Assembly: GCF_000143415.4 (NCBI RefSeq)
Contig: NW_003314275.1
Span: 186,001 to 250,000 of the forward strand
Length of the DNA stretch: 64,000 nucleotides
Direction: 5' to 3'
From: Selaginella moellendorffii
Taxonomy: Eukaryota; Plantae; Lycopodiophyta
Below, piece by piece: positions 1 to 46,310 of this stretch. Under the pieces are notes generated by a model. It saw only the letters and a program-made list of their open reading frames with translations, had not been told where the DNA came from and ran no database searches. The position numbers were made by a program, and so were the translations under genes. Each line of letters opens with the position of its first letter. The stretch's first letter is position 1.

Positions 1-2531
1 GGCTTGCACCTCTGAAAATAGGATTCTCCACCAAACACCAACCCCCTCTTCCAGAAGGCAATATGCTGTCTAATCCCGGCCACTATACTTTCCTGGTCTT
101 TGAGTCCATCCGGGTGCATCGGCCGTGGGGAACCCTAAGGAATCATAGGTTCCCCAGTTATGGGATCTCTCTTGAAGAGTTCAATGCCGTCCACTGGCAG
201 CCACACTGTGTCCCATTCTCTCATCTTGTACCTCATCACTGGAGCATCGTCACGCATGCTGAAATGAAACTGAAGAGGCTTGGAGTGGCCAATTAGCGTT
301 TCGGATCCGTCCCTGATGTAGCCTCTTACAAACCCCTTAAAGTCTGGAACCTCTGTCAGAAGTGCAGCTTCAACAGTGCCTTTGATGCAATTTTGGAATT
401 CATCGTAGAGTTGTGGGAGGGTGAGGACATTGGATCGCCGGAGGGACTCTGCCAGGTGACTGAACATGGCATCGACGTCTTCATGAGTGTGCCCAACCAT
501 GAGAAAGCCAAGTGTAACCGTTTCAAATATGCCTTTGGCAACAAGCATCGCCAAGTACGCGAAGACGTACATGTTTTTGTTCTCACTGCCAGCATTGTCT
601 GTTTGGAGCAGAAGATGGGGTGGAAGGCCACATCGGCCGCAAGAACTTCCTTGAGATTCTGCTTCGTTTGGATGAGGCTGTGCATTCACCGGGCGACCAG
701 CCTCGTCGGAATGGCATGAGGCCTCACGTGATAACCCTACAATCTGACGGCCAACATATTCACTGGGATGGCATGGGGCCCCACGCGATACTGGAAGCCT
801 TTGCTCCTCCTCCAGCTGAACCCTGTATGGGGTTCGATCGACAAGGGCCTTATGCAAGGGTTGGCCGTTCAGCTCAGTCTGCGCACTTTGCAGAGACCTT
901 AAGTGTTTTGCTAGGGACGCAATCATCATGTTTGCACCCCCGCCACCCCATAGAGGTACAAAGAAGTTCCCATAGTTCTGGGCACCATGCCCATGAGCGA
1001 TTATGCCAAACAGAGACACAGGCAGCTGCATGGATGAAGAGATTGCCTTGGGGGCAGGATTGAGTCGAGGTAAGCACGTCTTTTTCTGGTCCATTTTGTC
1101 GTGGATGATGCAGAGGTAAGAGTCAGGTCTCTCCATGGAGAGAATCCTGTTATGATAATATGCAGTCCTGCAGCTTCTCTGCTCGATGTTGTGGTCGAGC
1201 CGCCTTCTAACCAACGTCTCTCGCTCTTGAGCGCTGCAAGAATTCTTCGACAAAGCCATTTTGATAGCAGTGCACTCGTCACACTTTGAAAAGCTGGAGT
1301 ACTTTCCTATACTCACATCCTTGAACCTGTTGCTCCACAATCTACTAAATCTAGATTGGCTCAGCTTCCTGTAGCCATTACTCTGGAGTTCCCGATTCAC
1401 ATCTTCCAATATGGCCCCCTTGGTATACATGGAAGGGAGAACTCGTTGGGTGTCTCGTGTTCCATCTTCCAAGAGGCGGGTTTTATGTGGTTGCTGCTCG
1501 CTACATGTCTCGACAAACCTCTTGAAGATTGCCTCTCCATATACAACATGACCCCTGGTTTTGTGCGTACCGTCGTTCCCATGGACTGCCTGTTGAACCC
1601 TTTGTTCCTCGAACTCAATTTTGATTCTGTAGAATGTGGTTCGAGGGACTCCATAAATGATTCTCCATGCCTTCATGCAGACCAAACCCCTCTGGAAGAC
1701 CATGCCCCCCACCTGATGTTCTGAAGCATCAACAGATGACCGTAATGCCTCATACACAAAATTGCAAGCTGCCTTCCAGGACAATGTCTTGTATCTTGCT
1801 CTCTCCTCTTCAATAGCATCCCAATTAGCATGTTGACAGCACCTCCTCTTGCAACAAGCAACTGTCGAGACCATTCGAACCTCCATCGCCATTTTCTGCC
1901 TTTTCGGTTCGTTGCTCAGATCCCTTTGGCTGCGCTTTAGGAAGGTGTACTTTCTTTTCCCATGAAGAGATGTTCTGTCATCAGTTGTACTGGTGTTTGA
2001 TTGTGAATCCTTCACATTCTCAAACACTAAGTGCCTCAATTTCCACCGCACAATGCTTCCAATAGTCAGACTGTTTTCTTCTGTGTCAACAACCTCTAAA
2101 ATCGCAACTCCAATATCATCCCAGCCCAATTCTTGATTAGCAACCGCATCTCTTGGATCGACAACTGTGGCTAAGCCCTCAGCTACCACCTCCCCCTCGG
2201 GGTTGTTTAGAAACACTTTTGCCTGAATCCATGTAGCACGGTTCTTAAGATCCACGGAGGGAACATGCGTCGCACTTGCGCTGTCCCCAACATCTGCTTT
2301 CTTCTGAAGATTTTTCAAGGCAACAACAACATTTACCCCGACGACCATCTCTCCTCGTTCAATAGCGACCACATTCCCATCCAAGACAGTCTCTACTGAT
2401 ACAGCAGCATTGCCTTCCCCAAGCCTTTGACAGTGTATAACAAAGTTCCGATCCATAGACACAAGGGTCCCTTTTGCAACTCTCTTCCCACCATTCAAAA
2501 TGTAAACCTTTTCCCCAACCCTGAAGGCCAT
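1..2531 (-). pseudogene. Sola-like DDD transposase, copy A; premature TAG at 135-137, C-terminus continues beyond the window start
   Basis: 798-aa ORF with FSKCDEC (CxxC), IIHDKMDQKKTCLP (D1), LQTDNAGSENKN (D2) and GHTHEDVDAMFS (D3). Copy B has CAG at the stop position. Read-through gives ...IRQHIAFWKRGLVFGGESYF, matching ORF 29578-30156 of copy B. Confidence 0.75.
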
Positions 2532-2719
2532 TCTGAAAGTGCAGAAAAGAAGTTAAGACCATACAAAAAATGATTGGAGAATGGCCTAAATCATAACATA
2601 CCAAACAACCTCAATAGCATGAGGCCACATGCCATTATTCAAACATGCTATTGACACCCACGTGAAATTTCGCATTCACAAAATTGGCATGAGCCCTCAT
2701 GCCATTAGTGGTACCACTA

Positions 2720-2911
2720 ATGGCATGAGGCCTCACGCTATCTTTGGCCCCTGCTAGCCTGTTGCTATATTCCTTTTGCCTTGCTGCAACTATATATATT
2801 TTTGTGTGCGTGACTAGTCACCCATACAAAAATATATACAATTGCAGCAAGGCAAAAGGAATATGGCAATAGGCTAGCAGGGGTCAAAGTTGGCATGAGG
2901 CCTCATGCCAT
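2720..2911. repeat. ~190-bp near-perfect hairpin bounded by two 22-bp palindromes
   Basis: Arms ctttggcccctgctagcctgttgctatattccttttgccttgctgcaac... and ...ttgcagcaaggcaaaaggaatatggcaataggctagcaggggtcaaag, centred on tgactagtca (2811-2820). Confidence 0.9.
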
Positions 2912-4068
2912 CTTGATATACACACAGCTGCAGGCAAGTAAAAACATACATGACAATACGCTAGCCATGAAATTGCAAGGGCCCAAGATGGCATGTGGCC
3001 TCATGCCATTTCTAAATGTGGTCCTAAGCCATTCCATGGTGAACATACCAGGAAGCACAAGTGCCGAATATCAAGAGGAAGCGGTAGCCACACCAAAGAC
3101 AGTGCCGCTCGCAACACCGCAACTACTCATAGCGCCGCTCGCAACACCGCAACTGCTCGTAGCGCCGCTCGCACAAACTGCCACTCGCATAAACTGCCGC
3201 TCGCAATGGCGCTCGCAATGCCGCAACCGCTCGTAGACGCATAAACCACAGCCCACAACGCCGCTTACACAAGCAGCGCTCACTGCGCTCAGCGGAACCA
3301 AGAACACGGCGCACAAAAATGATAGACCTAGGAATGAGTTCGAGAATTCAAAAATAACACACGCTTGAACGTCACATCAAATCCTCTGACAAACCAGATC
3401 TTATGATTCCTCTGACAAATTTCAAACTGAGTAGCTTCTAGACTTTGCTGTCGAAGGTTGAACTTTGTCACATCATGTCTTTGCCTCGATCCAGCTGTGC
3501 CATGTCAGTGATTCGAACTTTGCCATGCCATGTCAGCGATCCGTGCCAAGATTATTCGCCGTGTAAAGGAATAATTACGCTGTGTGTGTACGTCCATTTA
3601 TGGCAATATAAGGCCACACGCCATTCAAAGAATAATGCTCGACATAAGGCCACACGCCATTCAAAGAATAATGCTAGTCGAGCATTTTTTGGTGCATTTT
3701 TGGGTTCAAAATTGCATGAGCCCACACGCTATAAAGTTTACCTGTACCAAAAATAGAAATAGCTTTATTTACTTGGGAATTTAAGTGGTTGAGGCATTTT
3801 TAAACTTACAAACACATGCCCTACTTACATTCCTTTGGTTGCCTAAAATTCAAAAATATTATAAACCTTTCTTTTTGCATTTTCAATGTTTTCAATTATG
3901 GTTTTTGATTTTCGTAGGACCAGCCTAGTAATCTATTTGCATCCCGTCATGTTTATAGCTAGCTTTCGTTCGTCCCCTTCGCTAACCTGAGATACATCTG
4001 CTCGGCATCTGCCTCTTACAGCATTTGCCCAGAAAGGGCATCTTTCTTCACGCAGCATTTGCCACATG

Positions 4069-4087
4069 TTTAGGGTTTAGGGTTTAG
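4069..4087 (+). repeat. Short plant telomere-type repeat (TTTAGGG)2TTTAG, telo-box-like, in the divergent intergenic region
   Basis: Read directly. Copy B has one more unit at 33682-33707. Confidence 0.8.
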
Positions 4088-5682
4088 CAATTCAGTAGCT
4101 TGATAAACATGCAAATACAGAACTTGATGCAAAATCCTTTGATATGTCACAATGCCCCTAGGACCATAAACACATTTCAATAGAGAGGGTCCTTTCATTT
4201 CATAACTCCTTACGTAGATCTTGGTGAAACCAGAGTTAGTGAAGTTAGTTTCTTGTGATCCCGCATCTGATTGTGATGTCCCTTTGCAGTTTCGATGGAA
4301 AGGTCAATGCACACCAAACTGTGAAATCTTGGAGCAAAATAACGGTCGGATCTATGGCAAATGCCCCTGAAACATTGTAAGGCTCGTGTGGTCTCATGTG
4401 GTGTCCGATTGAGATGCTTCTTTGTAGGGTCATCAAGAAAGACATTGTATACCATTCTGTAAAATCTAGTTGCGATCTAACGGTTGGATCTCCAGAAAAC
4501 TCAAAAAAATCTCGCGCGTGTCAGAATATCCTAGGAATATACTCCTATGTGCCCCTGAAAATGGCATGCGGCCCCACGCCATTCAAGAGATAATGCCAGA
4601 TGACGCCGAGAATTTTTTGGTGCATTTTTTGGGTTCAAAATTGCATGAGCCCACACGCTATAAAGTTTATCTTTGCCAAATAGAGAAAAGTTTATCTGTG
4701 TCATGTGAGGTAGTTACAGTCCTTTGTGCTCGGCATCTGCCTCTTGCAGCATTTGCACTGAAAGGGAATTTTTCTCCATTCAGCATTTGGCCCTGAAAAT
4801 GGCATGCGCCCACACGCCATTCAAGGAATAACGCCACAGGACGCCTGGATTTTTGGGTTTAAAATGTTTAGGGTTTTTTGGGTTTTTTCAAAATATTTTG
4901 GGTCCAACGTTTTTTGGGTTTCTTTGGTTCAAAATTGCATGAGCACACGCTATAATATTGATTTGAGAGAAAAATAGAAACAGATAGAATTTCTTTATTT
5001 AGCTGAACATCTGCCATTTTTGGAAATACAAGATGCTTTGGAATATCCAATCATGCATGGTATAAATATAGCGAGGGTATTAAATGATATCCCAATCATG
5101 ATCTTTCTTTTGGATTTCGCGTGCATGCAGTCCGAGGAATGATGACGTTGCGGATTTCTTTTGGATTTTGTGTGCTTGCATGCGCGCGGCAATCCAGAAA
5201 TTAATGGTGGCGCCCAAGTCCGAGGAATGATGACGTGGCGGGATTACCAACCGTTGTGACATTTCGCGCGTGTGAGGTTAGGTTTTGCATTTTGCTTTGT
5301 ACTCGCGCTCGCACACTCGCGCTCGCGCTCGCATCACACTCGCGCTCCCGCTCGCATCGCGCTCCCACTCGCGATCACGCTCACTTCTCTACAGGTTTCT
5401 CGTGTGCATCGGCGTCCACTCGCGCTTGCATCACACTCGCGCTCGCATCGCGCTCGTGTGCATCGGCGTCCACTTCAAGACACACCCAGTTTGTAACTTC
5501 GCCGCCAACTCCGCCGCCCACTCCACCACCCACACGCAGCCCACTTGGCGTCCCGGGAGATTTCAGCACCACTCTCCAACTGTAAGTGGCAGAGTAGCCT
5601 TGCTGCTACGATCCGCTGCACACACAGTGCACATTCGCCAGCGAGTCCGGCCTCGATTGTCACGGCCTCCATTCGGCTTCAA

Positions 5683-8600
5683 ATGGTAAGTCTTTTAGAC
5701 CAAGTAGAAAATGGCATGAGGCCACATGCCATTCAGTAGCAACATTGGCATGCACCGATTGGGCTCTCGAGTGCAGTCCGGTTACAGATGGCGTGTAGCC
5801 TCACGCCATCTTAGGATGCAGCCTCAAGACATCTGATGCAGTGGTGAATGGCGTGTGGCCTCACGTTATTTCCAGCTGCTAGCTTTTCATCTATCAGCTC
5901 TAATTGTTGTGCATTTTTGAACAGGCGAGGAATTGCGTTCTTCTTCCAGCCACTGTCAATGTGGATGCAGAGAAGGGGGAGGAGCTCACCAGTTGGACTT
6001 TCGGGATGGAAGGCGAGGATCTGATGCTGTACAACACAGATGGTGGGAGAAAAGAATGCATGGGGATCCTCATCCAAGTGACAGACACTCCATGCAGTTC
6101 CATGCAAGAATATGGACTGGCACTTGTGGTAGAGACAGCGTCCGCCTTCAAGATCCACCTTGCACATCCTAGCGGCTTCCCGGAGGGGGGCAGCGGCTAT
6201 GAGGAATTCCTAGAGGGAGCTAGGGAGAGGTTGTCCAGGAGGCCCACAATTTCAAATACGCTGCGGGTCTATGAAGATCACATGGAATCCACGGACCTCA
6301 CCTACGGTGATGTTCAAAAACTATATTCCAACATTGAGCCGTTGAGAGTGCCTCCAGTTTGCGAAGCGAAGGGGAAGGGGGTCGATCTGGAAACTACCCC
6401 GAAGCAGAAAAGGGTGGTCAAGCTCAAGCCGACGTCCGACTCTGCTGCTCCAAAAAAGAAGCTACTCGGTGATGCCATTGCCTCGGGTTCGAACACTACA
6501 CCCACCAAAAAGAAGAGCCGCAAAGAGCAGAAAGAGCAAGAAGAGGCAGCAAAAATCGTCGCAGATAATAGTACTTGTTACTATTCCAACAAAGTATATA
6601 CAATCGACGTGAGCCGTATCAAGATCCAAAGCAAATACAACCACAGGCTAGTATCTGATGAGTGGGTGGAGAAACTGAAGCAGAAGATGCTGGCAAGTCC
6701 AGTAACACCCGACATCGCAGACGTGATCCCCTACTACCGAACAATGAAGGGCGAGACGAGGTTTCCAGACTTGATCAATAGGAAGGTGTTGGACGATCAG
6801 AACATCCGGTTCTATGCCGTCTCCGGGCAGCATTCTAGCTTGGCGATGCAACAGATAGTTGTGGATATTATGGTGGGCGAGGAGGTGAAGAAAGTCTTCA
6901 AGACAAGAGTTGTCCGCCTGATAAAAGGCAACTCGCCCCTCCGATCTATCATATACATCTCCCACGCGCAGAATGTCAAGCAAGAAACGTGCTACAAATC
7001 GGGTCTGCACGAGACATTGGCACGAACACGGAAGCTCTGGGTTCAACTGAAGAAGCCACAAAAACCAGGACAAGGACGTGCACTAGCAACTAGCGCCTGG
7101 CAGGTAAGCCTCGTTGCATGTGGCATAGCATGTGGCCTCATGCCATTTCCATTGCAGGAATTCTCGAGTCTTCTCTCGAAAACACTGGGGGTCAATGACA
7201 CACTCAGCATCCATAACATTCTACTCACGACAAAAGTTGTTTTTGACAAATGGGTAGATGTGCTAAGGAGGTACCATGACGGGGAGTTGCTAAACTCAAT
7301 GGGTGTGGAGGACGGCCGGAAGCCCAATGATTTGAAGCTCAACGCCTTGCGTTTCTCGCGGTCTCTAGACGACGACGACCTTCTGACAGTGGCTAATGCT
7401 CTTCTACGTGGTGAGGTAGTCTTCAACAAGACCAAAATGACTCCCGGCCATATTGTGACATACGAGGACTTGTGCACGACTCTGAGAGCTCGTGCGCTAT
7501 TGAAGGATTGGATCTTCGAGCAAGTGGCCGTGGCGAGGGTGAGCATCGACACCACGCAAGAGATGATGGAAGAGCTGGACTTGTCAAATGAAGACATCGA
7601 CGAGTACGTGAAGGGGGCCCCCAAGTTCATCGATCTGCTGCGGGATGCCACGAAAAGTAAAGCTGAGAAGTTGGATCAGTATCCAAATTTCATTAAGAGG
7701 GATGTCGACCGCCGGCTTCAGAAACAGCTCGACCCCGCAGCAGAGGCCTATCGAGAACCTTACCGGGTATACGTGAATTCGGATGAGGATCAAAGGTGGA
7801 GGAGCATCGTTTCCCGCGGAGATGAGCAGGTCAAGAACATCTTTTGTGTGATGGACTTCACAAACAAGGAGATCACTCATGCAGACGAAGTCAGCTCCAT
7901 CATTGACTTAATGGTGGGACTTGCGGAGGTGGAATCTTCAGTCCACTATATGATCTACGACTCCGAATCCTATCACAAGTTCTGGAAGGCCTTGAACGAG
8001 GTGAAGGCTCGGTTGAAAGGCAAGGAGATGCGGGAGATCCATGGGATAATGGCTAAGAAGAAGATACCGACGAATGTCCGCATCTTCACAGTCGCCCTTA
8101 TTATTGGTCCTGCAGCAGAGTGGGACTGGAGTGACTTCCCAGCTTCGTTCAACAAAGCCGATCGAATTGATCTGAGGGAGGTCAATTTACCCGTGCCTGA
8201 GGAACTGAAGACGGCTATGGAGCTTTTGAATCCAGAGAAAGCTCCACGTGCAGCATGGGAAATGCTCAGCTGGGTCTTCAATGCAATAGCGGGTGACTCC
8301 AAGGGCAAATGCGTTGTCGAGTACAACTGCGGCGGACTATTCTTTCGAGCCGCACTACTCAAGGGTGTCCCGTGTGTTGCGGTGACAAACTCCATTGAAG
8401 AGGTGACTTCAATGGAGCATATAATTACAGTTGCCAAAGAAAAACAGTATCTTCTCTACGAACCTGGTGAGTACGCACTTTAAGTTTAAATGTTATCTCA
8501 CAAGCTCTGTATGCAGGAGCGTGGCCACCCCCAGATGCTGAAACGGCGTTAACAGCTACTGTTGGGCCGAGCTCACAACCTGCACAAGGTAAGGTCACGT

Positions 8601-11285
8601 GAGGCCTCACGCCATTTTGATTATAGATCATTGTGAATATTTAGACACGAGGACTGAAAAGCGCACTGGTGGCGCGTCGAAGAAGGACAAACAGACAAGC
8701 AATAGGAAAAAAGGAGGTACAAATTATATTTGCAATGGCGTGTGGTCTCATGCCATTCCTTGCAGGAGACACTTCTTCAAAGGCAAAACAGGCAAGCACC
8801 AGCCAAGCTCAAACTGACAGTGGTCATAAAAAGCGAAAGCACGTTGGACAGTCGTCGGGATCAGAGGCGTTTGATTCGAAAAGGAAGAAGGGCAACGAAA
8901 AGATGATAGGTAATGCCTCGCGGTTATGGCGTGTGTGCTCATGCCATTCATTGCAGATCAAGGGCTGAGTGAAAGGAGCCAGTCACCACCTTCTGACTCA
9001 GATTCCTATGGCGGACTCCCCTTCCCCAATCTCAATGGAGAGGTACAATGGATGAGGGATGCTTTTCAAGTCAGGGCCACGTTTTTCTCATCTCGTCGTC
9101 TTCGAAGGGTGCAAGAACGTGCAGAAACCATGTTAAGACAGTCGGGTGAGGATACGGTCCTAGGTCACGCACTAAAACAGGCTATGGATGTCTTGTATTT
9201 TGAGATGGAGACTCGGCCAGATGATTTTTCCAAGATGGTCCTGGAAAAACAAGCAATCCAGCCTGAGCAGCCTATGGAAGAAATGCAAGAGGGGGATGAG
9301 GAGCCAGAGAAAGATAATGAGCAGGAAGAGCAGAAGGACGAAGAGGAGGACAAAGAAGAGGAGGACGAAGAAGAGGAGGACGAAGAAGAGGAGGACGAAG
9401 AGGACTTGGATGGTCCTCACAATGGTGACGATCACAATAACGACGATGACGATGATGACGATGATGGCCAGCCTGAGGTGGCCAAAGAGCAGCGGAGGAA
9501 GGTCATACAAGACAAACCATCAGATAAATAATAGTACATCCATTCCTAACCTTTTACCATTTCTAACATTGTCCATGTAGGTCGCAGAAGAAATGGTAAG
9601 TAGAGATTATTCAGTTGAATTAAGATACAAACTCTAGCCTTTAGTGTCGAGGAAGGATAGTGCCAAGCAAGGGTCGAAACGTATGTCCAATCCTTCAGAA
9701 TCAGCAGTGCGCCCAAGTGATATCGGTCCTAGTTCCTCAATAGCAGTTGATGGTAAATACAGTATAGTCGATTCAATGTGCTAATGAGTTTGTTTTTAGT
9801 AGCACGGGAGGATACCATCTCAATCGAAGGGAGATATTTGGACATGCATATGGATCCGCCAGTGGACTCTACTTGCCTGCAAGAGTCATCAGAGCTGGTG
9901 GAGGCTACTATCCATATCAACGCCAAGCAAGCTGACCACGCTCCACTTGATGCTGCCCATACCACTGAGTCAATCTTGTCCACGTATCCAACTGACGGTG
10001 ACCAGGCGCCATTGGACCCACATGAGGCCGCCCCAGCCGCCGAGCCGGTCGTATCCTCATTTCCAACGTGTGCCCAATCGTCTGACTACGCGCCGTTGGA
10101 ACCTCCCTACACCGCCCCTGCTGCCTGTTCGGTCATGTCCACTTTGCCAACGGAGGCACCAGCTGAAATGGCGTGTGATCACACGCCATCGGAACCACCC
10201 CATGCCACTGTTGAGCCAGTTGTACCAGAGTCTACAGCTGAAATGGCATGTGCCCACACGCCATCGGATGCGATTGACCCCACATTGCAGAGGAGAGTAT
10301 TTCCGCCCTTCACGTTTCCTCGACCAAAACCCTCTGAACGACCATCGGGAGCACCATTCGCTAATATTGTAGATGGTAAAATTGACTTGTACCATTTTTT
10401 ATGCTAACGCATTTCATTTCAGAGTCACGGCGAAAGTACTGTATCGTTTTTGATCTGAACGGTGTCCTTTTCTCCCATGAGCGTGGCTCGTCCTCGAATG
10501 TCACTGCACCCTCCAAAGCCTGCGGTCGCAAGTTGGTCAAAAGAGACAGATTCACATTAATCACACGGGAGAAACTGCGGGATCTAATAATGACCATGCG
10601 ACACTTAAAACAGAGGGCCGGGTTCAATTTGCAATTGGGAGTTTGGACATCCATGATGCGCCACAATGCATTAACGTTGCTACAGATGATGCACGATCAG
10701 ACGCGAGTAATATTACCATTTGACTTTCTCCTAACGCAGGAGGATTGCTTGACTATGGTCCATGTGAGGGGTAGCAAGCCCATCTTCGTCAAGGCAGAGG
10801 CTGTAGTGATGAACCGGACTGCTAGGTCAAGTGAAATCCTCATCATCGATGACTCGCCGACTAAAACTGCAGCGAACACGCACACATATGCAGTGCACCC
10901 CATCTCTTGCAGTATGGAAACTAGGGAGAAGAAACCGTATGTTCTGGGGGACCTTGCAAAACGGCTTGAAGCGATAGTGATAGAGAACCGGCCAGTCCAG
11001 GAGGTGGCTGCAGAAATCAACCAAATGGCAGATGGAACGGTATATCAAAAGCCATTTGATCGGACAAACACCAGTCATCATTTATGGCATGTATATTGTC
11101 TAGCCAAGCACTATCCGCATCTCCATAATCTGCTCAACCGGATGGGTTCTTCGACCACTGAACATGAGCGTGGACGTATTAGAGAAGAGATGGCATTACT
11201 ATTGGGTTTAAATCCTGATAGTGTGGAGAGTGATGAAATTCCAAGATTATTGTATAGGCGTTGGAGGCAAAAAATAACAGTCTGA
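5683..11285 (+). CDS. Predicted 11-exon, ~1,635-aa protein: ParB/Srx-like domain, degenerate beta-class amino-MTase fold, charged linker, FCP1/NIF-like HAD domain (copy A)
   Basis: Exons 5683-5685, 5925-7103, 7158-8466, 8517-8588, 8645-8716, 8766-8909, 8957-9523, 9581-9595, 9645-9752, 9800-10375 and 10423-11285 splice in frame (4908 nt). The donor at 9524 is AT here but GT in copy B (38357). Motifs: FYAVSGQHSSLA (ParB GxHR-like), KCVVEYNCGGLFFRAALLKGVPCVAV (SAM motif I-like), IVFDLNGVL...LGVWTS...ILIIDDSP (HAD). Confidence 0.7.
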
Positions 11286-11692
11286 GATGGCATGTATTTA
11301 TTTAAAAATGTAACTTATTATGGCATGGGGTTCCATGCCATTGTATTAATATTAAAAGACAATTCTTTGAGAGGATTTGCATTATACTAGAAGTGTTACA
11401 GCATGTTATTGGAAGTCTACGAAGTTGTTTTATTAATAAGGGGAAAGTAAAGGTTGAATGGGAACTTGGGCTCCACCTAGACTCGGAGCAACTGAGCCAA
11501 TATTAAAAGGATGGAAAGAAATTGGACGACGATGACAAGGAGAAGAGAGAGGTGAAGCAGTGAGAAGTGATTGAGTAGACATTTCCTTGTTTAAAATAAA
11601 ATGGCATGTGCCTCAATGCAGTTGAATTTTGTTATATTTATATACTATATAAAGGTTTGGAAACCTTATTTTACAAGTGGGATAATGACAAT

Positions 11693-11716
11693 TCCCACTT
11701 TAACGAAATAGAGCTT
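11693..11716. repeat. Right TIR of copy A (TCCCACTTTAACGAAATAGAGCTT)
   Basis: Identical to 40548-40571 and reverse complement of 27947-27970. Confidence 0.95.
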
Positions 11717-11790
11717 AAAAGAAAATGACTTGAAATGAACTTCTACTGCACACGTCATAAGCTTATACATCCAGTTGGGGTCGTTTGGTA
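11717..11790 (-). pseudogene. 74-bp fragment of the MTase exon of a family-2 ParB-MTase gene, flanking copy A
   Basis: Matches 20721-20794 with one mismatch, then joins LTR sequence through a GGTA microhomology. Confidence 0.85.
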
Positions 11791-17510: not shown

Positions 17511-17513
17511 AAG

Positions 17514-23714: not shown

Positions 23715-23752
23715 ACAGTCAAAGAGAAAGAAAAATCAAGTGGGCCTAGACT

Positions 23753-28606: not shown

Positions 28607-28966
28607 CTAAGCGCTAGTGGACACCTCCTTTTTGGTACTCTCAGCGGTACTATCATCCTTCTCCGGGTCAATTGTTTTGCTTTGGATTGTTGTCTCTGAC
28701 GTTACTGGGGCGTTCTCCATAGTTGTTAATGTTGCCGTTTGTTTAGAAAAATGATCACCTGGAGTATAGTACGGGGAGTTTGGAAGACTTATATATTCTA
28801 CATCTTCACCTATCTCCTTCTCCGTCTCCTTTTCTACCTCACTTACAGATTTTGTGCTTGCCATGAAAACGCTCTTCACCCTAAAATATGGAGTTCGTTG
28901 TGTTATAAAAGGAAACCAACACACACGCTGCAAGGGAATGATGGTACATAAAGCACGTAAGCCCAC
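28607..28966 (-). CDS. Small acidic Ser/Thr-rich ORF near the left end of the transposon, function unknown
   Basis: MASTKSVSEVEKETEKEIGEDVEYISLPNSPYYTP...; flanked by palindromes; no family recognised. Confidence 0.3.
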   Translation of the reverse strand: MGLRALCTIIPLQRVCWFPFITQRTPYFRVKSVFMASTKSVSEVEKETEKEIGEDVEYISLPNSPYYTPGDHFSKQTATLTTMENAPVTSETTIQSKTIDPEKDDSTAESTKKEVSTSA

Positions 28967-29577
28967 AATATGGGTTTATGTGCCATTAATATGGGCCACA
29001 CGCCATATTATTAAAGTTATGCACGTGTGATTGGTAAATGCATATGTCACATCATCTTTGTTTTACCTCACACACTATATCAGGCCTAATGAACCATATC
29101 ACATGTGCGCACATGCTATATATATGGAGAAGTATTATGCAAGGATAGAAAAATTCAATGCATGATTGTGGAGAGCAATGGCATGAAGCCACATGCTAAA
29201 TAACATTTTAGAGAAAGAATTAAAATAAAAACATGCAAACAGTACTGAGTGGACCAAGACTTAGAAGTGCACAATTGAATGAGGTATTTCTAATAAATAT
29301 TTCACTCACCTCATATAGGAATGGCTACCACTCTCAAATGGCGTATCGCCTCATGCCATCACCTCGCAATTTGTTATAACAATCCGATGAATTCATATTC
29401 GGCTTGTTCACCTTGAACTTTAAGTAAGATTTGCTAGAACAACTAAGAATTTATACTTGTTATTTGTATCATCTCACCTAGGAATGGCGTAAGGCCACAT
29501 GCCATCACGTCTCCTTTGATTCAGATTCGGATTGTTCACCTTGAAATAAAATACATTAGAAACTTAGTAAAGGAATA

Positions 29578-34994: not shown

Positions 34995-37900
34995 ATGGTA
35001 AGTCTTTTAGGCCAAGTAGAAAATGGCATGAGGCCACATGCCATTCAGTAGCAACATTGGCATGCACCGATTGGGCTCTCGAGTGCAATCCGGTTACAGA
35101 TGGCGTGTAGCCTCACGCCATCTTAGGATGCAGCCTCAAGACATCTGATGCAGTGGTGAATGGCGTGTGGCTTCACGTTATTTCCAGCTGCTAGCTTTTC
35201 ATCTGTCAGCTCTAATTGTTGTGCATTTCTGAACAGGCGAGGAATTGCGTTCTTCTTCCAGCCACTGTCAATGTGGATGTAGAGAAGGGGGAGGAGCTCA
35301 CCAGTTGGACTTTCGGGATGGAAGGCGAGGATCTGAGGCTATACAGCATAGATGGTGGCAGAAAAGAATGCATAGGGATCCTCATCCAAGTGACAGACAC
35401 TCCATGCAGTTCCATGCAAGAATATGGACTGGCACTTGTGGTAAAGATAGCGTCCACCTTCAAGATCCACCTTGCACATCCTAGCGGCTTCCCGGAGGGG
35501 GGCAGCGGCTATGAGGAATTCCTAGAGGGAGCTAGGGAGAGGTTGTCCAGGAGGCCCACAATTTCAAATACGCTGCGGGTCTATGAAGATCACATGGAAT
35601 CCACGGACCTCACCTACGGCGATGTTCAAAAACTATATTCCAACATTGAGCCGTTGAGAGTGCCTCCAGTTCGCGAAGCGAAGGGGAAGGGGGTCGATCT
35701 GGAAACTACCCCGAAGCAGAAAAGGGTGGTCAAACTCAAGCCGACGTCTGACTCTCCTGCAGCTCCAAAAAAGAAGCTACTCGGTGATGCCATTGCCTCG
35801 GGTTCGAACACTACACCCACCAAAAAGAAGAGCCGCAAAGAGCAGAAAGAGCAAGAAGAGGCAGCAAAAATCGTCGCAGATAATAGTACTTGTTACTATT
35901 CCAACAAAGTATATACAATCGACATGAGCCGTATAGACATCCAAAGCAAATACAACCACAGGCTAGTATCTGATGAGTGGGTGGAGAAACTAAAGCAGAA
36001 GATGCTGGCAAGTCCAGTAACACCCGACATCGCAGACATGATCCCCTACGACCGAACAATGAAGGGCGAGACGAGGTTTCCAGACTTGATCAATAGGAAG
36101 GTGTTGGACGATCAGAACATCCGGTTCTATGCCGTCTCCGGGCAGCATTCTAGCTTGGTGATGCAAGAAATAGTTGTGGATATTATGGTGGGCGAGGAGG
36201 TGAAGAAAGTCTTCAAGACAAGAGTTGTCCGCCTGATAAAAGGCAACTCGCCCCTCCGATCTATCATATCCATCTCCCACGCGCAGAATGTCAAACAAGA
36301 AACGTGCTACAAATCGGGTCTGCACGAGACATTGGCACGAACACGGAAGCTCTGGGTTCAACTGAAGAAGCCACAAAAACCAGGACAAGGACGTGCACTA
36401 GCAACTAGCGCTTGGCAGGTAAGCCTCGTTGCATGTGGCATAGCATGTGGCCTCACGCCATTTCCATTGCAGGAATTCTCGAGTCTTCTCTCGAAAACAC
36501 TGGGGGTCAATGACACACTCAGCATCCATAACATTCTACTCGCGACAAAAGTTGTTTTTGACAAATGGGTAGATGTGCTGAGGAGGTACCATGACGGGGA
36601 GTTGCTAAACTCAATGGGTGTGGAGGACGGCCGGAAGCCCAATGATTTGAAGCTCAACGCCTTGCGTTTCTCACGGTCTCTAGACGACGACGACCTTCTG
36701 ACAGTGGTTAATGCTCTTCTACGTGGTGAGGTAGTCTTCAACAAGACCAAAATGACTCCCGGCCATATTGTGACATACGAGGACTTGTGCACGACTCTGA
36801 GAGCTCGTGCGCTATTGAAGGATTGGATCTTTGAGCAAGTGGCCGTGGAGAGGGTGAGCATCAACACCATGCAAGAGATGATGGAAGAGCTGGAGTTGTC
36901 AAATGAAGACATCGACGAGTACGTGAAGGGGGCCCCCAAGTTCATCGATCTGCTGCGGGATGCCACGAAAAGTAAAGCTGAGAAGTTGGATTAGTATCCA
37001 AATTTCATTAAGAGGGATGTCGACCACCGGCTTCAGAAACAGCTCGACCCCGCAGCAGAGGCCTATCGAGAACCTTACCGGGTATACGTGAATTCGGATG
37101 AGGATCAAAGGTGGAGGAGCATTGTTTCCCGTGGAGATGAGCAGGTCAAGAACATCTTTTGTGTGATGGACTTCACAAACGAGGAGATCACTCATGCAGA
37201 CGAAGTCAGCTCCATCATTGACTTAATGGTGGGACTTGCGGAGGTGGAATCTTCAGTCCACTATATGATCTACGACTCCGAATCCTATCACAAGTTTTGG
37301 AAGGCCTTGAACGAGGTGAAGGGTCGGTTGAAAGGCAAGGAGATGCAGGAGATCCATGGGATAATGGCTAAGAAGAAGATACCGACGAATGTCTGCATCT
37401 TCACACTCGCCCTTGTTATTGGTCCTGCAGCAGAGTGGGACTGGAGTGACTTCCCAGCTTCGTTCGACAAGGCCGATTGAATTGATCTGAGGGAGGTCAA
37501 TTTACCCGTGCCTGAGGAACTGAAGACGGCTATGGAGCTTTCGAATCCAGAGAAAGCTCCACGTGCAGCATGGGAAATGCTCAGCTGGGTCTTCAATGCA
37601 ATAACACCTGCTTCTGACTCCAAGGGCAAATGCGTTGTCGAGTACTACTGCGGCGGACTATTCTTTCGAGCCGCACTACTCAAGGGTGTCCCGTGTGTTG
37701 CGGTGACAAACTCCATTGAAGAGGTGACTTCAATGAAGCATATAATTACAGTTGCCAAAGAAAAATAGTATCTTCTCTGCAAACCTGATGAGTACGCACT
37801 TTAAGTTTAAATGTTATCTCACAAGCTCTGTATGCAGGAGCGTGGCCACCCCCAGATGCTGAAACGGCGTTAACAGCTATTGTTGGGCCGAGCTCACAAC

Positions 37901-40129
37901 CTGCACAAGGTAAGGTCACGTGAGGCCTCACGCCATTTTGATTATAGATCATTGTGAATATTTAGACACGAGGACTGAAAAGCGCACTGGTGGCGCGTCG
38001 AAGAAGGACAAACAGACAAGCAATAGGAAAAAAGGAGGTACAAATTATATTTGCAATGGCGTGTGGTCTCATGCCATTCCTTGCAGGAGACACTTCTTCA
38101 AAGGCAAAACAGGCAAGCACCAGCCAAGCTCAAACTGACAGTGGTCATAAAAAGCGAAAGCACGTTGGACAGTCGTCGGGATCAGAGGCGTTTGCTCCTA
38201 AAGAAGAGGAGGACGAAGAAGAGGAGGACAAAGAGGACTTGGTCGGTCCTCACAATGGTGACGATCACAATAACGACGACGATGATGATGACGACAATGG
38301 CCAGCCTGAGGTGGCCAAAGAGCAGCGGAGGAAGGTCATACAAGACAAACCATCAGGTAAATAATAGTACATCCATTCCTAACCTTTTACCATTTCTAAC
38401 ATTGTCCATGTAGGTTGCAAAGCAAATGGTAAGTAGGGATTATTCAGTTGAATTAAGATACAAACTCTAGCCTTTAGTGTCGAGGAAGGATAGTGCCAAC
38501 CAAGGGTCGAAACGTATGTCCAATCCTTCAGAATCAGTAGTGCGCCCAAGTGATATCGGTCCTAGTTCCTCAATAGCAGTTGATGGTAAATCGAGTATAG
38601 TCGATTCAATGTGCTAATGAGTTTGTTTTTAGTAGCCAGTAGGGAGGATACCATCTCAATCGAAGGGAGATATTTGGACATGCATATGGATCCGCCAGTG
38701 GACTCTACTTGCCTGCAAGAGTCATCAGAGCTGGTGGAGGCTACTATCCATATCAACGCCAAGCAAGCTGACCACGCTCCACTTGATGCTGCCCATACCA
38801 CTGAGTCAATCTTGTCCACGTATCCAACTGACGGTGACCAGGCGCCATTGGACCCGCATGAGCCGCCCCAGCCGCCGAACCGGTCGTATCCTCATTTCCA
38901 ATGGACTCAACGTGTGCCCAATCGTCTGACTACGCGCCGTTGGAACCTCCCTACACCGCCCCTGTTGCCTGTTCGGTCATGTCCACTTTGCCAATGGAGG
39001 CACCAGCTGAAATGGCGTGTGATCACACGCCATCGAAACCACCCCATGCCACTGTTGAGCCAGTTGTACCAGAGTCTACAGCTGAAATGGCATGTGCCCA
39101 CACGCCATCGGATGCGATTGACCCCACATTGCAGAGGAGAGTATTTCCGCCCTTCACGTTTCCTCGACCAAAACCCTCTGAACGACCATCGGGAGCACCA
39201 TTCGCTAATATTGTAGATGGTAAAATTGACTTGTACCATTTTTTATGCTGACGCATTTCATTTCAGAGTCATGGCGAAAGTACTGTATCGTTTTTGATCT
39301 GAACGGTGTCCTTTTCTCCCATGAGCGTGGCTCGTCCTCGAATGTCACTGCACCCTCCAAAGCCTGCGGTCGCAAGTTGGTCAAAAGAGACAGATTCACA
39401 TTAATCACACGGGAGAAACTGCAGGATCTAATAATGACCATGCGACACTTAAAACAGAGGGCCGGGTTCAATTTGCAATTGGGAGTTTGGACATCCATGA
39501 TGCGCCACAATGCATTAATGTTGCTACAGATGATGCACGATCAGACGCGAGTAATATTACCATTTGACTTTCTCCTAACGCAGGAGGATTGCTTGACTAT
39601 GGTCCATGTGAGGGGTAGCAAGCCCATCTTCGTCAAGCCAGAGGCTGTAGTGATGAACCGGACTGCTAGGTCAAGTGAAATCCTCATCATCGATGACTCG
39701 CCGACTAAAACTGCAGCGAACACGCACACATATGCAGTGCACCCCATCTCTTGCAGTATGGAAACTAGGGAGAAGAAACCATATGTTCTGGGGGACCTTG
39801 CAAAACGGCTTGGAGCGATGGTGATAGAGAACCGGCCAGTCCAGGAGGTGGCTGCAGAAATCAACCAAATGGCAGATGGAACGGTATATCAGAAGCCATT
39901 TGATTGGACAGACACCAGTCATCATTTATGGCATGTATATTGTCTAGCCAAGCACTATCCGCATCTCCATAATCTGCTCAATCGGATGGGTTCTTCCACC
40001 ACTGAACATGAGCGTGGACGTATTAGAGAAGAGATGGCATTACTATTGGGTTTAAATCCTGATAGTGTGGAGAGTGATGAAATTCCAAGATTATTGTATA
40101 GGCGTTGGAGGCAAAAAATAACAGTCTGA
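34995..40129 (+). pseudogene. ParB-MTase-HAD cargo gene, copy B (stops ending at 36994, 37480 and 37768; deletion near 38195)
   Basis: Colinear with 5683-11285. Confidence 0.8.
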
Positions 40130-40575
40130 GATGGCATGTATTTATTTAAAAATGTAACTTATTATGGCATGGGGTTCCATGCCATTGTATTAATATTAAA
40201 AGACAATTCTTTGAGAGGATTTGCATTATACTAGAAGTGTTACAACATGTTATTGGAAGTTTACGAAGTTGTTTTATTAATAAGGGGAAAGTAAAGATTG
40301 AATGGGGACTTGGGCTCCACCTAGACTCGGAGCAACTGAGCCAATATTAAAAGGATGGAAAGAAATTGGACGACGATGACAAGGAGAAGAGAGAGGTGAA
40401 GCAGTGGCAGGGGGAGGAGAAGTGATTGAGTAGACATTTCCTTGTTTAAAATAAAATGGCATGTGCCTCAATGCAGTTGAATTTTGTTATATTTATATAC
40501 TATATAAGGGTTTGGAAACCTTATTTTACAAGTGGGATAATGACAATTCCCACTTTAACGAAATAGAGCTTTATA

Positions 40576-41712
40576 GAGCAATCTTCAAAAGCACTGGCAT
40601 TCGAGGAAGGAAGATACATGGGAATAGGGCTTTCTATTAAGATGTTACATGATAGGATGAAGAGAAAATTAACACCACCCACCCGAACAATGGCAATTGT
40701 AGTTGAGGAAGTGTTCCGTGGCACATTTATGGAGTACACTCCCCGAGCTTCTATTAGTGATATGAAGACTGTCCGCTCAAAGCGTCATTTTTCCTGTGCT
40801 AGGGAAGATGTTGGTACGGACCTTGGAGCGAAAAGCTCTCATAGGCCTGATGTCAAGTACCATTCTACTCCAAGACACCGCTCTCGGACTGAGCCACCTC
40901 AAGTGGCTGATGAAAAAAGTGCATCGCAACAGGTTGAAATTGCTTACCATAGCGTGGAGCCGAAGCAATAGGCAATCTGACACGTGCCAGCAAAATCGAA
41001 TGTAAGGTGTGTGGGGATGCTTCCAAGGGGCAAGTGTTGGGCTTGGATTCGTGGTGATAAATCTGCTTCTGTTCCAGCCCCATATTTCTATAGGGAACGA
41101 AAGCAAGTAGGATTTTCGAGATGGTGCTGGCTATATTGTTGCAACACCGACGCCAACCATACGAAGCGGCTTGAAGACACTATAGTGACTAAACCTGATG
41201 CAGTACCTAAAGAATGTCTGGTTGCTAATAGGGTCGCACTCACCTCAGATGAGATTGAAAACCTTGAGAAATCTAGTTTCAATCTTGAGAGGAGAGTTGG
41301 AGATATGAGTGACAAAACCAGGACTATTCCTATAGAGATGCACAGGAGGCCAGCATGAAAAGGTAAGGCAGTTAAATCTATTAGTACCGTCTCCAAGCAG
41401 AAGCAAGGTAAAATAAATTTAGCTCAAACACTTGAGTGTGAGATTCTCTCTACGAAGTATATCATTACGCTTGCAAAGGAGTATATAGTCAAAACAGAAG
41501 GTGGAGAGTACACAATTGCCATTCACGACTTTCCTTTTTGCACATGTCTAGACTTTACGAAGCGCGAGGAACATAGGAAGGCATATGCTCCTTGCAAGCA
41601 TATATACTACATCTTCATCAACATCTTACATCAGGATCCTAAAGTGGATATTCATATACACCAAGCAAGCTTTACTATTGCTGAGTTGCAAAAAACTTTT
41701 GGAGCTAACTAG
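40576..41712 (+). pseudogene. MULE-like transposase, 3' part with SWIM zinc finger
   Basis: Continues the frame from 27946. FPFCTCLDF...APCKHIYYIF (CxC...CxH) at ~41530-41615. Confidence 0.8.
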
Positions 41713-42774: not shown

Positions 42775-45560
42775 GTCCACGCCCCATCCTTCAAGTGGCC
42801 TTTAGTCACAGCTTAGGACATCACCATCAGCGTTTGGAAAACCATCTAGCATGTCAAAGAACATGAAGTTTATGCTCTCAAGCGGTCGCTTATGGATCTT
42901 CTGACAAAAGCACTCCCACTTTTGCCGGATAGCCATATTCTCAGCATCCTCCTTAAAAGATGCCATCAATGAACTGTAGGAGCTAATAAAGATCCCAACT
43001 TCACCACGAAATGCCATTGGAGAAACAAGGCGAATCTAGGGGGAGAAGACAAAGGTCAAATGTGAATTTAAGAAAAATTTACATACCAGTCATATGGCAT
43101 AAAAAATTTAGAAAAATTTACATAACCGTCATGTGGCATGTGGTAGATGTAAGTTCCTCCAAATCCTCTTCTTAAACATCAAGACGAGTTGGAATGAAGT
43201 TACTCCTGACAATTTTTGCTACAACCATTTTGAGGAATTAAAAATAGGAGAGACTTAAGAGAAATATACCTCGAGAAGTTCCTCAGTTGTGGGCACGTCT
43301 TGAATGATCATCATCACTATTGATTGATTCCTCTAGATGTGGATTTGCACGCTTTTGTTGAGGTAGAACTTCTTATACATTCTGGTTCTCTTACTCCACT
43401 TCGTCCCGAGGAATTTTTTGCAAGTTGTTCTGACAACCATCTTCATTCTCCTTGCCATTGGCACCAACAGTGTCGACATTCTCATGGCCATCATCTTCAT
43501 CATCCGGCATGTCTTCATTATTGCCTCTTGTAGCCTCTCGGTAGGTTGGTGCATAATTTGGCATCTCTAATTCCCAAGGACAAGCTCACTTTATTGCTGT
43601 TAGAAATTTTGTTGTTGTCGGGTACATGCCTCCATCTCTTACACCATGCCTCAAGAGTCGTTTGCATACTAGTGTTTCAAGAGGAATGCCTCTATTTTGG
43701 AAATACCTATAATAGAATATAAACAAATTGAATATGGTTAAGAAACTGTATGTTACTTAAAAGCCGCTCACTGCATAAAGGTTGCCCAAGTTGTTTATCA
43801 AATGGAGTCTTGCTTATGGCCTTCTTTGGTAGCTATTCCTCTCCGAGTTTTGTAAGCTCAGTGGTGACAAAGTCCTTGAATGGAAGTTGTTTAGGATCAT
43901 CCCCTATGAAAGGTGTTAGAAACACCTCCCATTCATATATAATTTGTGAAATGTAGACAGTCCTCTTTATTATAGTCTCCATCATATTGTCCAAACCTTT
44001 TTCTCCATCTCTGAGTCTACTATTGAGGTCGTTCAGAATGTGTATTAGAATAGAGTCTTGCCCACTAAGAAATAACTTTTGTGAGTAACCTTCAAGTAAA
44101 CACAAACAATACTTACTTTCATGACAAGCAAACTCTGTTATAATATCAAACCACTCCTTTGGGCATCGAGGGTCAACCACACTGAGTAATTTCTTTACCT
44201 TTATTTTCTTTATGATGTTGATTTTCTTGTCAATTACAGCTAAATGCTCTGAGAGTTTTTGATCATTTTTAGCTCAATGCGACTATGCATATGCATCTTG
44301 CCTAACCTTCACCAATGGCTGAAGACATCACAAACATTCTATGACAAGAAGTATACTTGGAAGAACATACTTTACTCCACACGGCTATCATAAAAGCCAT
44401 TAGATTCTTGTACCATCTATTGGCAATTTGATGACCTCTTTAATGCCGAGTAAGTGATGCTAAATTATCACTATAGTGGCTGTAGACTTCATCCTCATCG
44501 AGATTGGCAAGAAATTGGATCTGCTCGATATCATGTACTAGGCTTTTCTTTTGCACTACAAACTATCCCAACCTGCAAAACACAAATTGTTAAAAGTGAT
44601 TGAAGATGGAACATTGGTGTGATAGACAAGATCGTCTCAGAAGTATTCATTGATGCACTTCATCCACATACACCAGCGATGATTCCTATCGATAATGTAG
44701 AACATTTTCCCCACAAATTGTTGAGTCTCAAGATGTCTCATAAGCATGTTATCAAATTTGCAGGACTTCATTTTCCAAATGTCATCCTAAACCCTCTCGA
44801 TTTCTAGTGACATCGAGAGGGCATTTGTCATTCCTGGCTTGAAAACCGAAATAAGCAATATACCTATGTTTGTCCCAAGGCCATTTTATTTGTATAGACT
44901 ATAGATATCCATGTTGACAAAGTGAGGTGAAGTAGACCAAATGATGCTTGTTTAAGTGAATTGACACAGTAGGATTTCTCGGATCATGTCTCCCAGGCCT
45001 TCCCACTTGAGAGACTCTAGAGTCATGTGAACGGCCTTCTCTTTGGTTCTCAAAACTGTCTTTTGGAAGTGCTTGTTTATGACGTGTTCAAGTAGCTCCA
45101 CTTCTCTTTTAGCTTCAGCTACACCTCCAATAGCACCATTATCAAATCTAGCCCCCAGCTCGGGCCCAACACCCCCGTCAGGCGCACTTGGGGACTGCTC
45201 TGTAATGCAGCTAGTTTTTGCCAAATTTTGCGAATATGTTAAGAGTAGTGGCATTTGTGGTTGTGGCAGCAATGGCAGTGATGGCAACAGTTGCAATGGC
45301 GCTACTAATGGTGAGGTAATGGCAATGATGGCAGTGGTGGTAATGGTGGTGAAGGTGGTGGTAATGGTGGTGAAAGTAGTGGTGGTAATGGCAGTCAAGG
45401 TGGTGGTGGCATTGATGGCGGTGGTGGCGAAAATGGGGGTGGATGTGGATTGGAGCTATCTGGTTGCGAAAATGGCAATGTAGACGGTAGAGTTGTTGCT
45501 ATGGAAATCTCTATCTGAAGGTCAAATTGATTGTCATCCTGGATCTCGTCTTCCTCATGT
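42775..45560 (-). pseudogene. Third ParB-MTase gene, diverged paralog of 20245-23714, heavily decayed and 3'-truncated
   Basis: KHFQKTVLRTKEKAVHMTLESLKWEG vs KRFQETIMRTREKVVHQTLEALKWPG. FYIIDRNHRW (IIDRNHR at 44676-44696). KRTVYISQIIYEWEVFLTPFIGDDP vs KRAVYITQTISECEKFLAPHIGDDP. INFMFFDMLDG vs ADFIFFDFPDG. Confidence 0.8.
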
Positions 45561-45682
45561 CTTGTTCTCTTTGATCCAACATCTTTATCCTTTTCTAGTT
45601 TATTTTGTTTTCATTTTTAAAAATAAGAAAAACTCATTATAAAATAAAAATGTATAAGAAGTAATTGCATGGTGGTCATCCA

Positions 45683-46310
45683 CTGGTACGCTAGCGTACC
45701 AACTGAGGGAGGCAACGCCCAAGCCCACTTGATGTCCGGGCTAACTCAGCCCACAGCCTAGCCGAGTGCCCCGGCCGGGCCACACGGCCCGGTTCGCCAG
45801 CGTACCAGTGCGGCCCACACCGAGTGCCTGGCCAAATTCCCAGCCGAGTGCTCGGGCCAGGCCACACATGCTATCCTGCCCCGCACAGGGCCACAGCCCG
45901 GCCGACTACCCGCGCTGGTATGCCGGTGAACCAGCATATGTGGCCAGGTCGGGCCACACGTGCCGGCCTGGCCCGCGCCTGGGCACTTGGCACGGGCCAA
46001 GCCACGCAGGCAGGTTCCCTGGTGTACTGCCTCCCCCCCCCCCCCGTGTGCCTGGCCTAGGCACTTGGCACAGACTAGGCCACATGGGTGGGTTTGCCAG
46101 CATACCAGCCCGCCCCACACTGCCATGGCTGGCTTGCACTGAGTGCCCGGCCAAGTGCCTGGCCTAAGCACTTGGCGCGGGCCAAGCCACGCGGACGGGT
46201 TTGCTGGTGTACCAGCCTGCCCCACACTACCATGGCCAGCCCCTGCTGAGTTCCTGGCTGAGTGCCTGGCCTAGGCACTTGGCGAGGCCTAGGCCATGCA
46301 GGCAGGTTGT
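45683..46310. repeat. GC-rich array with a ~20-bp palindromic core CTGGTWCGCYRGCGWACCAG at ~100-bp spacing
   Basis: Cores at about 45683, 45789, 45915, 46011, 46089 and 46196; several are degenerate. Confidence 0.75.

Follow-up and report, generated by a model that had tools for sequence, protein, structure and literature searches.

ParB-like accessory genes and element-specific palindromes in transposons of Selaginella moellendorffii: a candidate self-recognition module

ParB-like genes have been described as accessory genes of large transposons in algae. In red algae they were reported on Plavaka, Zisupton, Mutator and Fanzor-associated elements, next to tandem inverted repeats, and binding of the ParB-like protein to its own element was proposed, with a comparison to VANDAL transposons (Petroll et al. 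2025, 10.1101/2025.02.11.637652; also Curr Biol 2025). In Ectocarpus, the giant Sola1 element Sola1-1_Ec32 carries a gene combining ParB and N4/N6-methyltransferase domains on the strand opposite to its transposase, and for green algae the paper refers to Iyer, Abhiman and Aravind 2011 (Genome Biol 2025, PMC12477816). The present study concerns 64,000 nucleotides of the lycophyte Selaginella moellendorffii (assembly GCF_000143415.4, contig NW_003314275.1, positions 186,001 to 250,000), referred to below as the window. Transposons lie nested within one another in this stretch of plant DNA, which holds three ParB-like accessory genes, A, B and C, each accompanied by a palindrome of its own. The preliminary description of this DNA had presented the arrangement as a candidate new system. 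That claim cannot be upheld as such, since the algal reports already propose the design, and the finding is an extension of it to land plants with sharper evidence, not a discovery. Our literature search found no report of transposons with a ParB-like gene and palindromes in land plants.

We propose, at about even chances, that each element carries a two-part self-recognition module consisting of an accessory protein and a lineage-specific palindrome. The first part would be a protein in which a ParB/Srx-type N-terminal domain and a helical domain are fused to a catalytically dead N6/N4-methyltransferase-like domain, with a dead FCP1-like domain in addition in the Sola-type element. The second part would be a CpG-containing palindrome of 20-22 bp, different in each lineage, to which a dimer of the protein would bind. 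For B and C, which are of Mutator type, the sites would be those of the tandem array in front of the accessory gene; for A, of Sola type, they would be those between the divergent genes, in short GT..AG segments and in coding linkers. Most likely, the protein would mark or regulate its own element, conceivably by acting on the element promoters, by countering silencing or by helping to assemble the transposition complex, while it would write no methyl groups. We infer this binding, and what follows from it, from two features, namely the ParB fold and sites that are strictly specific to their lineage, because of which self-recognition between protein and site is the best explanation.

The three palindromes were found in numbers far above chance and each was confined to its own element, in agreement with what had been noted before. 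Motif 1 (ATGGCRTGWGGCCWCAYGCCAT) gave 39 matches at ≤3 mismatches in the window, compared with 0 in 100 shuffles, and all of them fell within 711-10264 or 28489-39108, that is, within one or the other copy of element A; relaxing the limit to 4 mismatches raised the count to 43. The tally of half-sites pointed the same way, with 71 inside the A copies versus 6 in the remaining 39.7 kb, other transposons included. For motif 2 there were five matches, all within 23785-24482 (0 expected), and a sixth unit is cut by an assembly gap at 23977. Motif 3 had four matches at ≤3 mismatches, all within 45683-46215 (0.01 expected). The consensus previously given for motif 3 had zero exact matches in the window, where only decayed copies of it were found. 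The R/Y positions of motif 1 are its two CpG positions, and 48 of the 115 departures from the inferred original motif, ATGGCGTG-WGGCCW-CACGCCAT, are CpG transitions. Because the departures are rich in such transitions, the original site is judged to have held CpG and to have decayed like methylated DNA. By eye, the same CpG decay was seen in the C array and in the liverwort sites described below. The elements look methylated and silent.

Element A is 12.6 kb long and has a 24-bp terminal inverted repeat (AAGCTCTATTTCGTTAAAGTGGGA). The similarity between its two copies stops at GAGCTT in both, at the right end of copy 1. Sola elements make 4-bp target duplications, and copy 2, the only complete copy, is flanked by a duplication of TATA (27943-27946 and 40572-40575). 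By its parallel with Ectocarpus Sola1, element A may be called Sola-like. As had been proposed, the region 34995-40129 is a copy of 5683-11285, with 96-97% identity. Copy 2 is dead, as frameshifts disrupt its transposase gene, 494 bp have been deleted and there is a TAG at position 36992. In element A the open reading frame (ORF) of the transposase and the accessory gene are divergent and face each other, and about 22-27 palindromes per copy are dispersed across the whole element. Two of these (711 and 768) lie inside the transposase ORF, and five, seen in copy 2, in the left part at 540-1540 bp from the end. Nine more lie inside the accessory gene, where five of the nine occupy segments of 38-59 nt with good donor and acceptor bounds. 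From their sequence these segments are probable mini-introns, and several have the tail GCCATTC.TTGCAG in common, as would result from duplication of a single mini-intron unit together with its palindrome. The segment containing palindrome 7125 corresponds both to a gap in the alignment with a fern homologue (P0031) and to a loop of low confidence in the structural model of protein A. Two further palindromes of gene A encode a repeated linker peptide, AEMAC.HTPS. Separately, copy 1 has nearly identical palindromes at 2684 and 2890 (2684-2911), and the sequence separating them is missing from copy 2 (at 32539-32560), which suggests recombination or slippage between A palindromes.

The AlphaFold2 model of protein A was built on an alignment of 21 sequences and had a mean predicted local distance difference test score (pLDDT) of 65, with 75-90 over the first 170 residues. 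A Foldseek search with the N-domain placed Noc, ParB, PadC and Srx on top at a probability of 0.97-1.0, with a template-modelling (TM) score of 0.55 for Noc. In VIA-align, the same domain matched PadC with Z 9.3 (root-mean-square deviation 3.1, 99 residues) and KorB (8qa8) with Z 8.7, and the model matched pNOB8 ParB-N with Z 8.3 over residues 7-296. The ParB/Srx fold attributed earlier to this protein was thus recovered by both methods. The helical domain (residues 203-395) was also modelled with confidence. Over residues 400-635, VIA-align returned the beta-class N6/N4 DNA methyltransferases M1.HpyAVI (Z 8.5), CcrM (8.2), MboIIA (8.1), M.BceJIV (8.0) and PvuII (7.6), and language-model features of ORF residues 615-859 pointed nearly only to PF01555 clusters, at 0.78-0.80. 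In sequence searches, Pfam N6_N4_Mtase (PF01555) did not match A, and the orthologous ORF of Calypogeia matched it below the gathering score (E 1.6e-3, 18.9 bits); a word-index protein search with the A ORF gave zero matches and a PDB sequence search with A no useful one. The last ORF of the gene encodes 294 aa and belongs with the FCP1/NIF-like part, for which a fern homologue (P0013) reached E 5.8e-17 against NIF. Its HAD motif reads FDLNGVL in A and LDLNGLL in fern P0031, with the second Asp of DxDx(T/V) changed to Asn. Both enzyme-like parts of A are predicted to be catalytically dead, because motif IV reads DFTN, within VMDFTN, motif I reads EYNCGG, and DLNGV stands in place of DxDx(T/V).

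Genes B and C form a second family. They share about 50% amino-acid identity in conserved blocks and 67-76% DNA identity, and no similarity of A to either of them was found at the BLAST level. Because B and C are homologous and A lacks BLAST similarity to them, the window contains two families and three lineages; of the three sequence-distinct genes counted previously, A is distinct from the other two, whereas B and C are relatives. Between the ParB region of the A family and that of B/C, hhalign aligned only 15 columns around SGQHS/DGNHR with a probability of 1%, too little to show homology. By its language-model features (0.92, high recognition), the ParB exon of B groups with ParB_N and DUF6551, as expected from the preliminary description, and its motif IIDGNHRYGAW fits the DGxHR variant of box II. 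The last exon of B matched Pfam N6_N4_Mtase below threshold (E 3.7e-4, 21 bits versus a cut-off of 26.7). Gene B also holds FFDFPDG, a degenerate form of DPPY, and VIDCIAGSDS...AIEK; motif IV of C reads FFDMLDG. A word-index protein search with the ParB exon of B gave zero matches, and PDB sequence searches with this exon and the last exon gave no useful match. Gene C contains several in-frame stops and is a pseudogene. In exon 1 of both B (23159-23604) and C (44952-45483) there are long proline-rich (PPPPSPP)n runs, which create spurious ORFs in other frames.

Gene B stands back-to-back with a Mutator-like transposase remnant, which lies upstream on the opposite strand. A Pfam search of this remnant gave no match, and terminal repeats for element B were looked for between 19.2 and 42.9 kb with none found. 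A transposase-like ORF beside B had low-recognition atlas matches to viral glycoproteins, which were judged to be noise. The search for transposase similarity beside or downstream of C found none. The gene-palindrome pairs of the window thus comprise a DUF7869/Sola-like element and a Mutator-like element, with C keeping gene and array without a transposase. The layout of the sites differs between the families: those of A are dispersed, and those of B and C form tandem units of 96-107 bp immediately 5′ to the gene. The B array lies upstream of gene B, with 29 bp between its start and the first ATG, and the assembly gap at 23977-24076 splits it in mid-unit; past this gap there are ~150 bp of non-repeat sequence and then three more units. 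Within 45977-46308, each unit of the C array also holds a second palindrome-like motif, AGTGCCTGGCCTAGGCACT. This array is adjoined by a Ty3/gypsy long terminal repeat (LTR) retrotransposon at 46313-51817 with RNase H and integrase ORFs, the LTRs of which (46313-46676 and 51461-51817) are 89.6% identical. A further piece of B-type sequence adjoins the right end of A copy 1, where the 74 bp at 11717-11790 match part of a gene B exon (20721-20794) with 98.6% identity. Blocks that follow (11787-13735) recur at 17509-18421, near the gap at 18709-18942; the arrangement reflects either a second B-type fragment that has been rearranged or a duplication in the assembly. The coordinates of the main features are collected in Table 1.

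Table 1. Coordinates of the transposons, accessory genes, protein domains and palindrome arrays in the window
Feature	Position	Strand	Remarks
Element A, copy 1 (Sola-like DNA transposon)	1..11716	+	96-98% identical to 30116-40571; left part off window
Element A, copy 2	27947..40571	+	Complete at both ends, defective, nested in element B transposase gene
Transposase ORF of A copy 1, 798 aa	135..2531	-	Pfam DUF7869, E 1.1e-42
Region between the divergent A genes	2614..5869	.	13 copies of the 22-bp palindrome
Accessory gene A, copy 1	5683..11285	+	Main ORF 5904-8483 (859 aa), several short exons, last ORF 10401-11285
Short GT..AG palindrome segments in gene A (probable mini-introns)	5686-5736, 7104-7157, 8589-8626 or 8644, ~8707-8765, ~8909-8956	+	GTAAG.../...TTGCAG ends
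54-nt in-frame segment with palindrome 7125	7104..7157	+	Bounded by GTAAGC and TTGCAG; mini-intron or linker
ParB/Srx-like N-domain of A	6573..7056	+	Fold search; model pLDDT 75-90
N6/N4 methyltransferase-like region of A	7743..8450	+	Motif IV DFTN, motif I EYNCGG
FCP1/NIF-like HAD domain of A	10401..11285	+	Pfam NIF 27.7 bits, cut-off 21.8
Gene B, ParB-like + methyltransferase-like accessory gene of Mutator-like element	20245..23714	-	ParB exon 22665-22916, methyltransferase-like exons 20245-20957
B array, 96-bp units	23743..24515	.	Each an ~80-nt inverted repeat centred on GAGGTTATT-YR-AATAACCTC
Mutator-like transposase remnant of B, part 1	26408..27946	+	Peptides FMVDGAGANWNGV ... RTCEFHWAQSLNQH by eye; cut by A copy 2
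Mutator-like transposase remnant of B, part 2	40573..41709	+	FCTCLDFTKREEHRKAYAPCKH by eye; SWIM-type CxC...CxH zinc finger ~41.5 kb
Gene C, decayed relative of B	42775..45560	-	tblastx and blastn versus B
C array, degenerate ~107-bp units	45681..46308	.	CTGGTWCGC-YR-GCGWACCAG; heavy CpG decay; immediately 5′ to gene C

Relatives of A in other plants provided a comparison of protein and palindrome across lineages. An exhaustive HMMER search with A gave 16 weak matches, mostly from land plants, namely Selaginella, the liverworts Calypogeia and Riccia and the fern Adiantum. One candidate, a bacterial repeat protein of 2573 aa (P0002), was rejected as a spurious match. The fern protein P0031 (1125 aa, ending in a NIF domain) aligned to residues 245-624 of the A ORF with E 2e-16. 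In Calypogeia fissa (L001), the palindrome GCCTCGAGA-N3-TCTCGAGGC occurs 15 times along 4.9 kb, in the gene and past its end. Two loci of Riccia sorocarpa, L007 and L008, have the palindromes CTTCGGGACGCGTCCCGAAG and TCATGGGGACGCGTCCCCATGA, which share the core GGGACGCGTCCC and amount to 46 copies at ≤2 mismatches over both loci, one cross-match in L007 excluded. When all motifs were tabulated against all loci, no motif appeared in any foreign locus. Riccia L008 also carries a transposase homologous to that of A (6794-4353, E 1e-44), upstream of the gene on the opposite strand, which is the same two-gene architecture as in element A. In all four lineages the protein alignments break right after the ParB N-domain (A residues ~387-417), and palindromes are located at this break at 7125 in A, at 10499-10604 in Calypogeia and at 11723-11780 in L008; in L007 there is a single 10-mer of the motif at ~11668, which is not a site at ≤2 mismatches. 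The liverwort relatives of A thus combine the same gene, and in part the same position within it, with quite different palindromes, and the suggestion that the palindrome follows the protein lineage was supported. That homologues elsewhere carry palindromes of their own proved true for the A family in Calypogeia and Riccia, but not for all matches. Homologues on the short contigs L004-L006 showed no repeated palindrome, and these, like a homologue at another Selaginella locus (L002, see below), may be transcripts or domesticated or relic copies.

Two other explanations of the gene-palindrome association deserve consideration, and we regard each of them as improbable. Many DNA transposons carry repeated subterminal binding sites for their transposase. 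Conceivably, the palindromes could be such subterminal or internal sites, serving a transposition complex, and the link with the ParB-like gene could be one of mere co-residence. The presence of A sites in both halves of the element, including the five in its left part, would fit this idea. However, the terminal repeat of A is unlike its palindrome, the outermost sites lie 400-540 bp away from the element ends, and the B and C arrays abut the 5′ end of the accessory gene rather than a terminus. Furthermore, the link between gene and palindrome is maintained with two unrelated transposase types in the window and, in red algae, with Plavaka, Zisupton and Fanzor-encoding elements. Because the link holds across these transposase types and several red-algal superfamilies, the common factor is the ParB-like gene and not the transposase.

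The other explanation, which we consider equally improbable, dispenses with a dedicated protein. The palindromes would then be self-propagating or structure-forming repeats, such as hairpins, cruciforms, sources of small RNAs or products of slippage and unequal recombination. The tandem ~80-nt inverted repeats of B do resemble hairpin-RNA loci, the loss between palindromes 2684 and 2890 in A copy 2 fits recombination between sites, and the methylated and silent appearance of the elements, with their CpG transitions and almost no RNA reads, is compatible with it. The 22-bp sites of A, however, are too short for hairpin RNAs and do not occur in the 39.7 kb of the window outside the A copies, other transposons included. 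Moreover, four lineages of one gene family keep different perfect palindromes, partly at the same intron or linker position, which neutral spread would hardly yield. Self-recognition by protein and site accounts for these features and therefore remains our preferred explanation. Lastly, a possibility raised in the preliminary description, that the accessory protein is an active DNA methyltransferase writing N6-methyladenine (6mA) or N4-methylcytosine (4mC) at or near the palindromes, is very improbable, since, despite the methyltransferase-like region that was rightly recognised beforehand, its fold and its motif I region, and the DNA methyltransferase domain annotated in the Ectocarpus Sola1 homologue, the catalytic motif IV, (D/N/S)PP(Y/F/W), is lost, reading DFTN in A, DFPD in B and DMLD in C, motif I of A is degenerate and no member reaches the Pfam gathering score.

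Several observations weigh against the proposed module and have to be set against the evidence in its favour. A homologue of the helical middle part of A lies among host genes (ArfGap, VQ and SCAR) at 10001-11425 of Selaginella moellendorffii L002, where palindromes and a transposase were looked for and none was found; this homologue may be a relic or a domesticated copy. Between the two copies of A, the palindromes differ by 5 changes in 403 positions and their flanks by 211 in 10020, so that divergence was not significantly slower in the palindromes. The A family has the signature F.AISGQHS..A, with no arginine, in place of the GERR box; because the GERR arginines, which bind CTP, are replaced by SGQHS, formation of a CTP-dependent clamp by A is doubtful. 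The methyltransferase-like part of the A model has a pLDDT of 50-62, and Z values of about 8 are near the level that VIA-align calls common, generic Rossmann folds scoring 7-8. For B, AlphaFold2 gave a pLDDT of 39 on the ParB exon alone, and the domain assignments rest on the sub-threshold Pfam match, the language-model features and motifs recognised by eye. In addition, B (22917-22919) and C (~44787) have an in-frame TAG in common at the start of the ParB exon, and no donor-acceptor pair was found that would join exon 1 of B to its ParB exon in frame; B otherwise keeps long ORFs. Finally, three RNA-seq runs of the same species contained 0-4 reads on gene A (95-99% identity), all within 5683-6243, and one of these runs (X1) is probably DNA; no splice evidence or other sign of expression of gene A was seen in the three sets of raw reads.

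The window as a whole has a G+C content of 45% and contains two assembly gaps. That at 18709-18942 is flanked by two microsatellite blocks and touches none of the genes or arrays described here; the ORFs spanning it are artefacts of N. On the minus strand at 57792-59055 there are ORFs matching Pfam MFS_MOT1 (molybdate transporter), which are probably exons of a host gene. At 62074-62758, a 346-bp unit is present in two tandem copies with 92% identity and includes repeats of 28-30 bp.

A wider interpretation, which we put forward tentatively as the less probable extension of the module, is that non-seed land plants hold an old Sola-type family in which a ParB-like pseudo-enzyme and its palindromes evolve together, as an equivalent in eukaryotes of ParB/parS or KorB/OB. 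The dense sites inside the genes of the element would be accommodated as spliceable mini-introns at conserved positions, and the protein would recognise the element and allow it to escape or tune silencing.

Compared with the described systems, the nearest relatives are the algal ones. Like the genes described here, red-algal PAG3 fuses a ParB-like N-domain to a domain related to DNA modification and occurs on large DNA transposons of several superfamilies. Its layout, with tandem inverted repeats beside the gene, is exactly that of B and C, and the dispersed sites of A represent a variant. In contrast to the methyltransferase-like domain of the plant genes, PAG3 has a 2OG-oxygenase domain; it is known from red algae, and its ParB assignment is given as a weak HHpred match (E 0.29). 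Dispersed sites, sites in introns and a co-variation table are not reported in the sections of the PAG3 description used here. The window extends this picture by three adjacent lineages, each with a site of its own, by enzyme domains that are predicted to be dead, by sites distributed across an entire element, some of them in probable mini-introns whose position is conserved, and by a co-variation table of four plant lineages. Ectocarpus Sola1-1_Ec32 and element A, compared by description, have the same two-gene architecture. The passages available from that description mention no palindromes and treat the methyltransferase as possibly active, whereas A has lost the catalytic motif and has an FCP1-like domain in addition. 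Bacterial and phage ParB-methyltransferase fusions (PF02195 + PF01555) have the same domain order as the plant genes, and B shares with them the DGxHR-type motif; the topology of the plant proteins may be that of beta-class amino-methyltransferases, in which motif IV precedes motif I. Unlike the plant genes, the bacterial fusions keep DPPY and reach the Pfam thresholds.

Another point of comparison is VANC of the Arabidopsis VANDAL elements, which are Mutator-like. VANC is an accessory protein that acts on short element-specific motifs, and protein and motifs co-diverge. It has no relation in sequence or fold to the plant ParB-like proteins, its motifs are not palindromes, and its function has been shown experimentally, whereas that of the ParB-like proteins is predicted. 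If the ParB-like proteins bind their own palindromes, they would represent a second, independent case of transposon self-recognition in eukaryotes beside VANDAL/VANC, one built from a bacterial ParB module and enzyme domains without chemistry. The three lineages with their different sites, together with the liverwort pairs of protein and site, constitute a natural specificity panel on which cognate and non-cognate binding can be compared directly. Among bacterial systems, KorB, ParB/parS and Noc/NBS need the GERR arginines for CTP, while the A family has SGQHS and B has DGNHR; unlike these systems, the plant elements have no ParA partner and their proteins carry enzyme domains that are predicted to be dead. 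KorB is a ParB-family protein for which palindromic OB operators, dispersed over the IncP plasmid RK2, control the plasmid promoters. With the similarly dispersed sites of element A, and with KorB, Noc and ParB among the best structural matches of the A N-domain, KorB/OB on RK2 is the nearest working analogy to the module proposed here.

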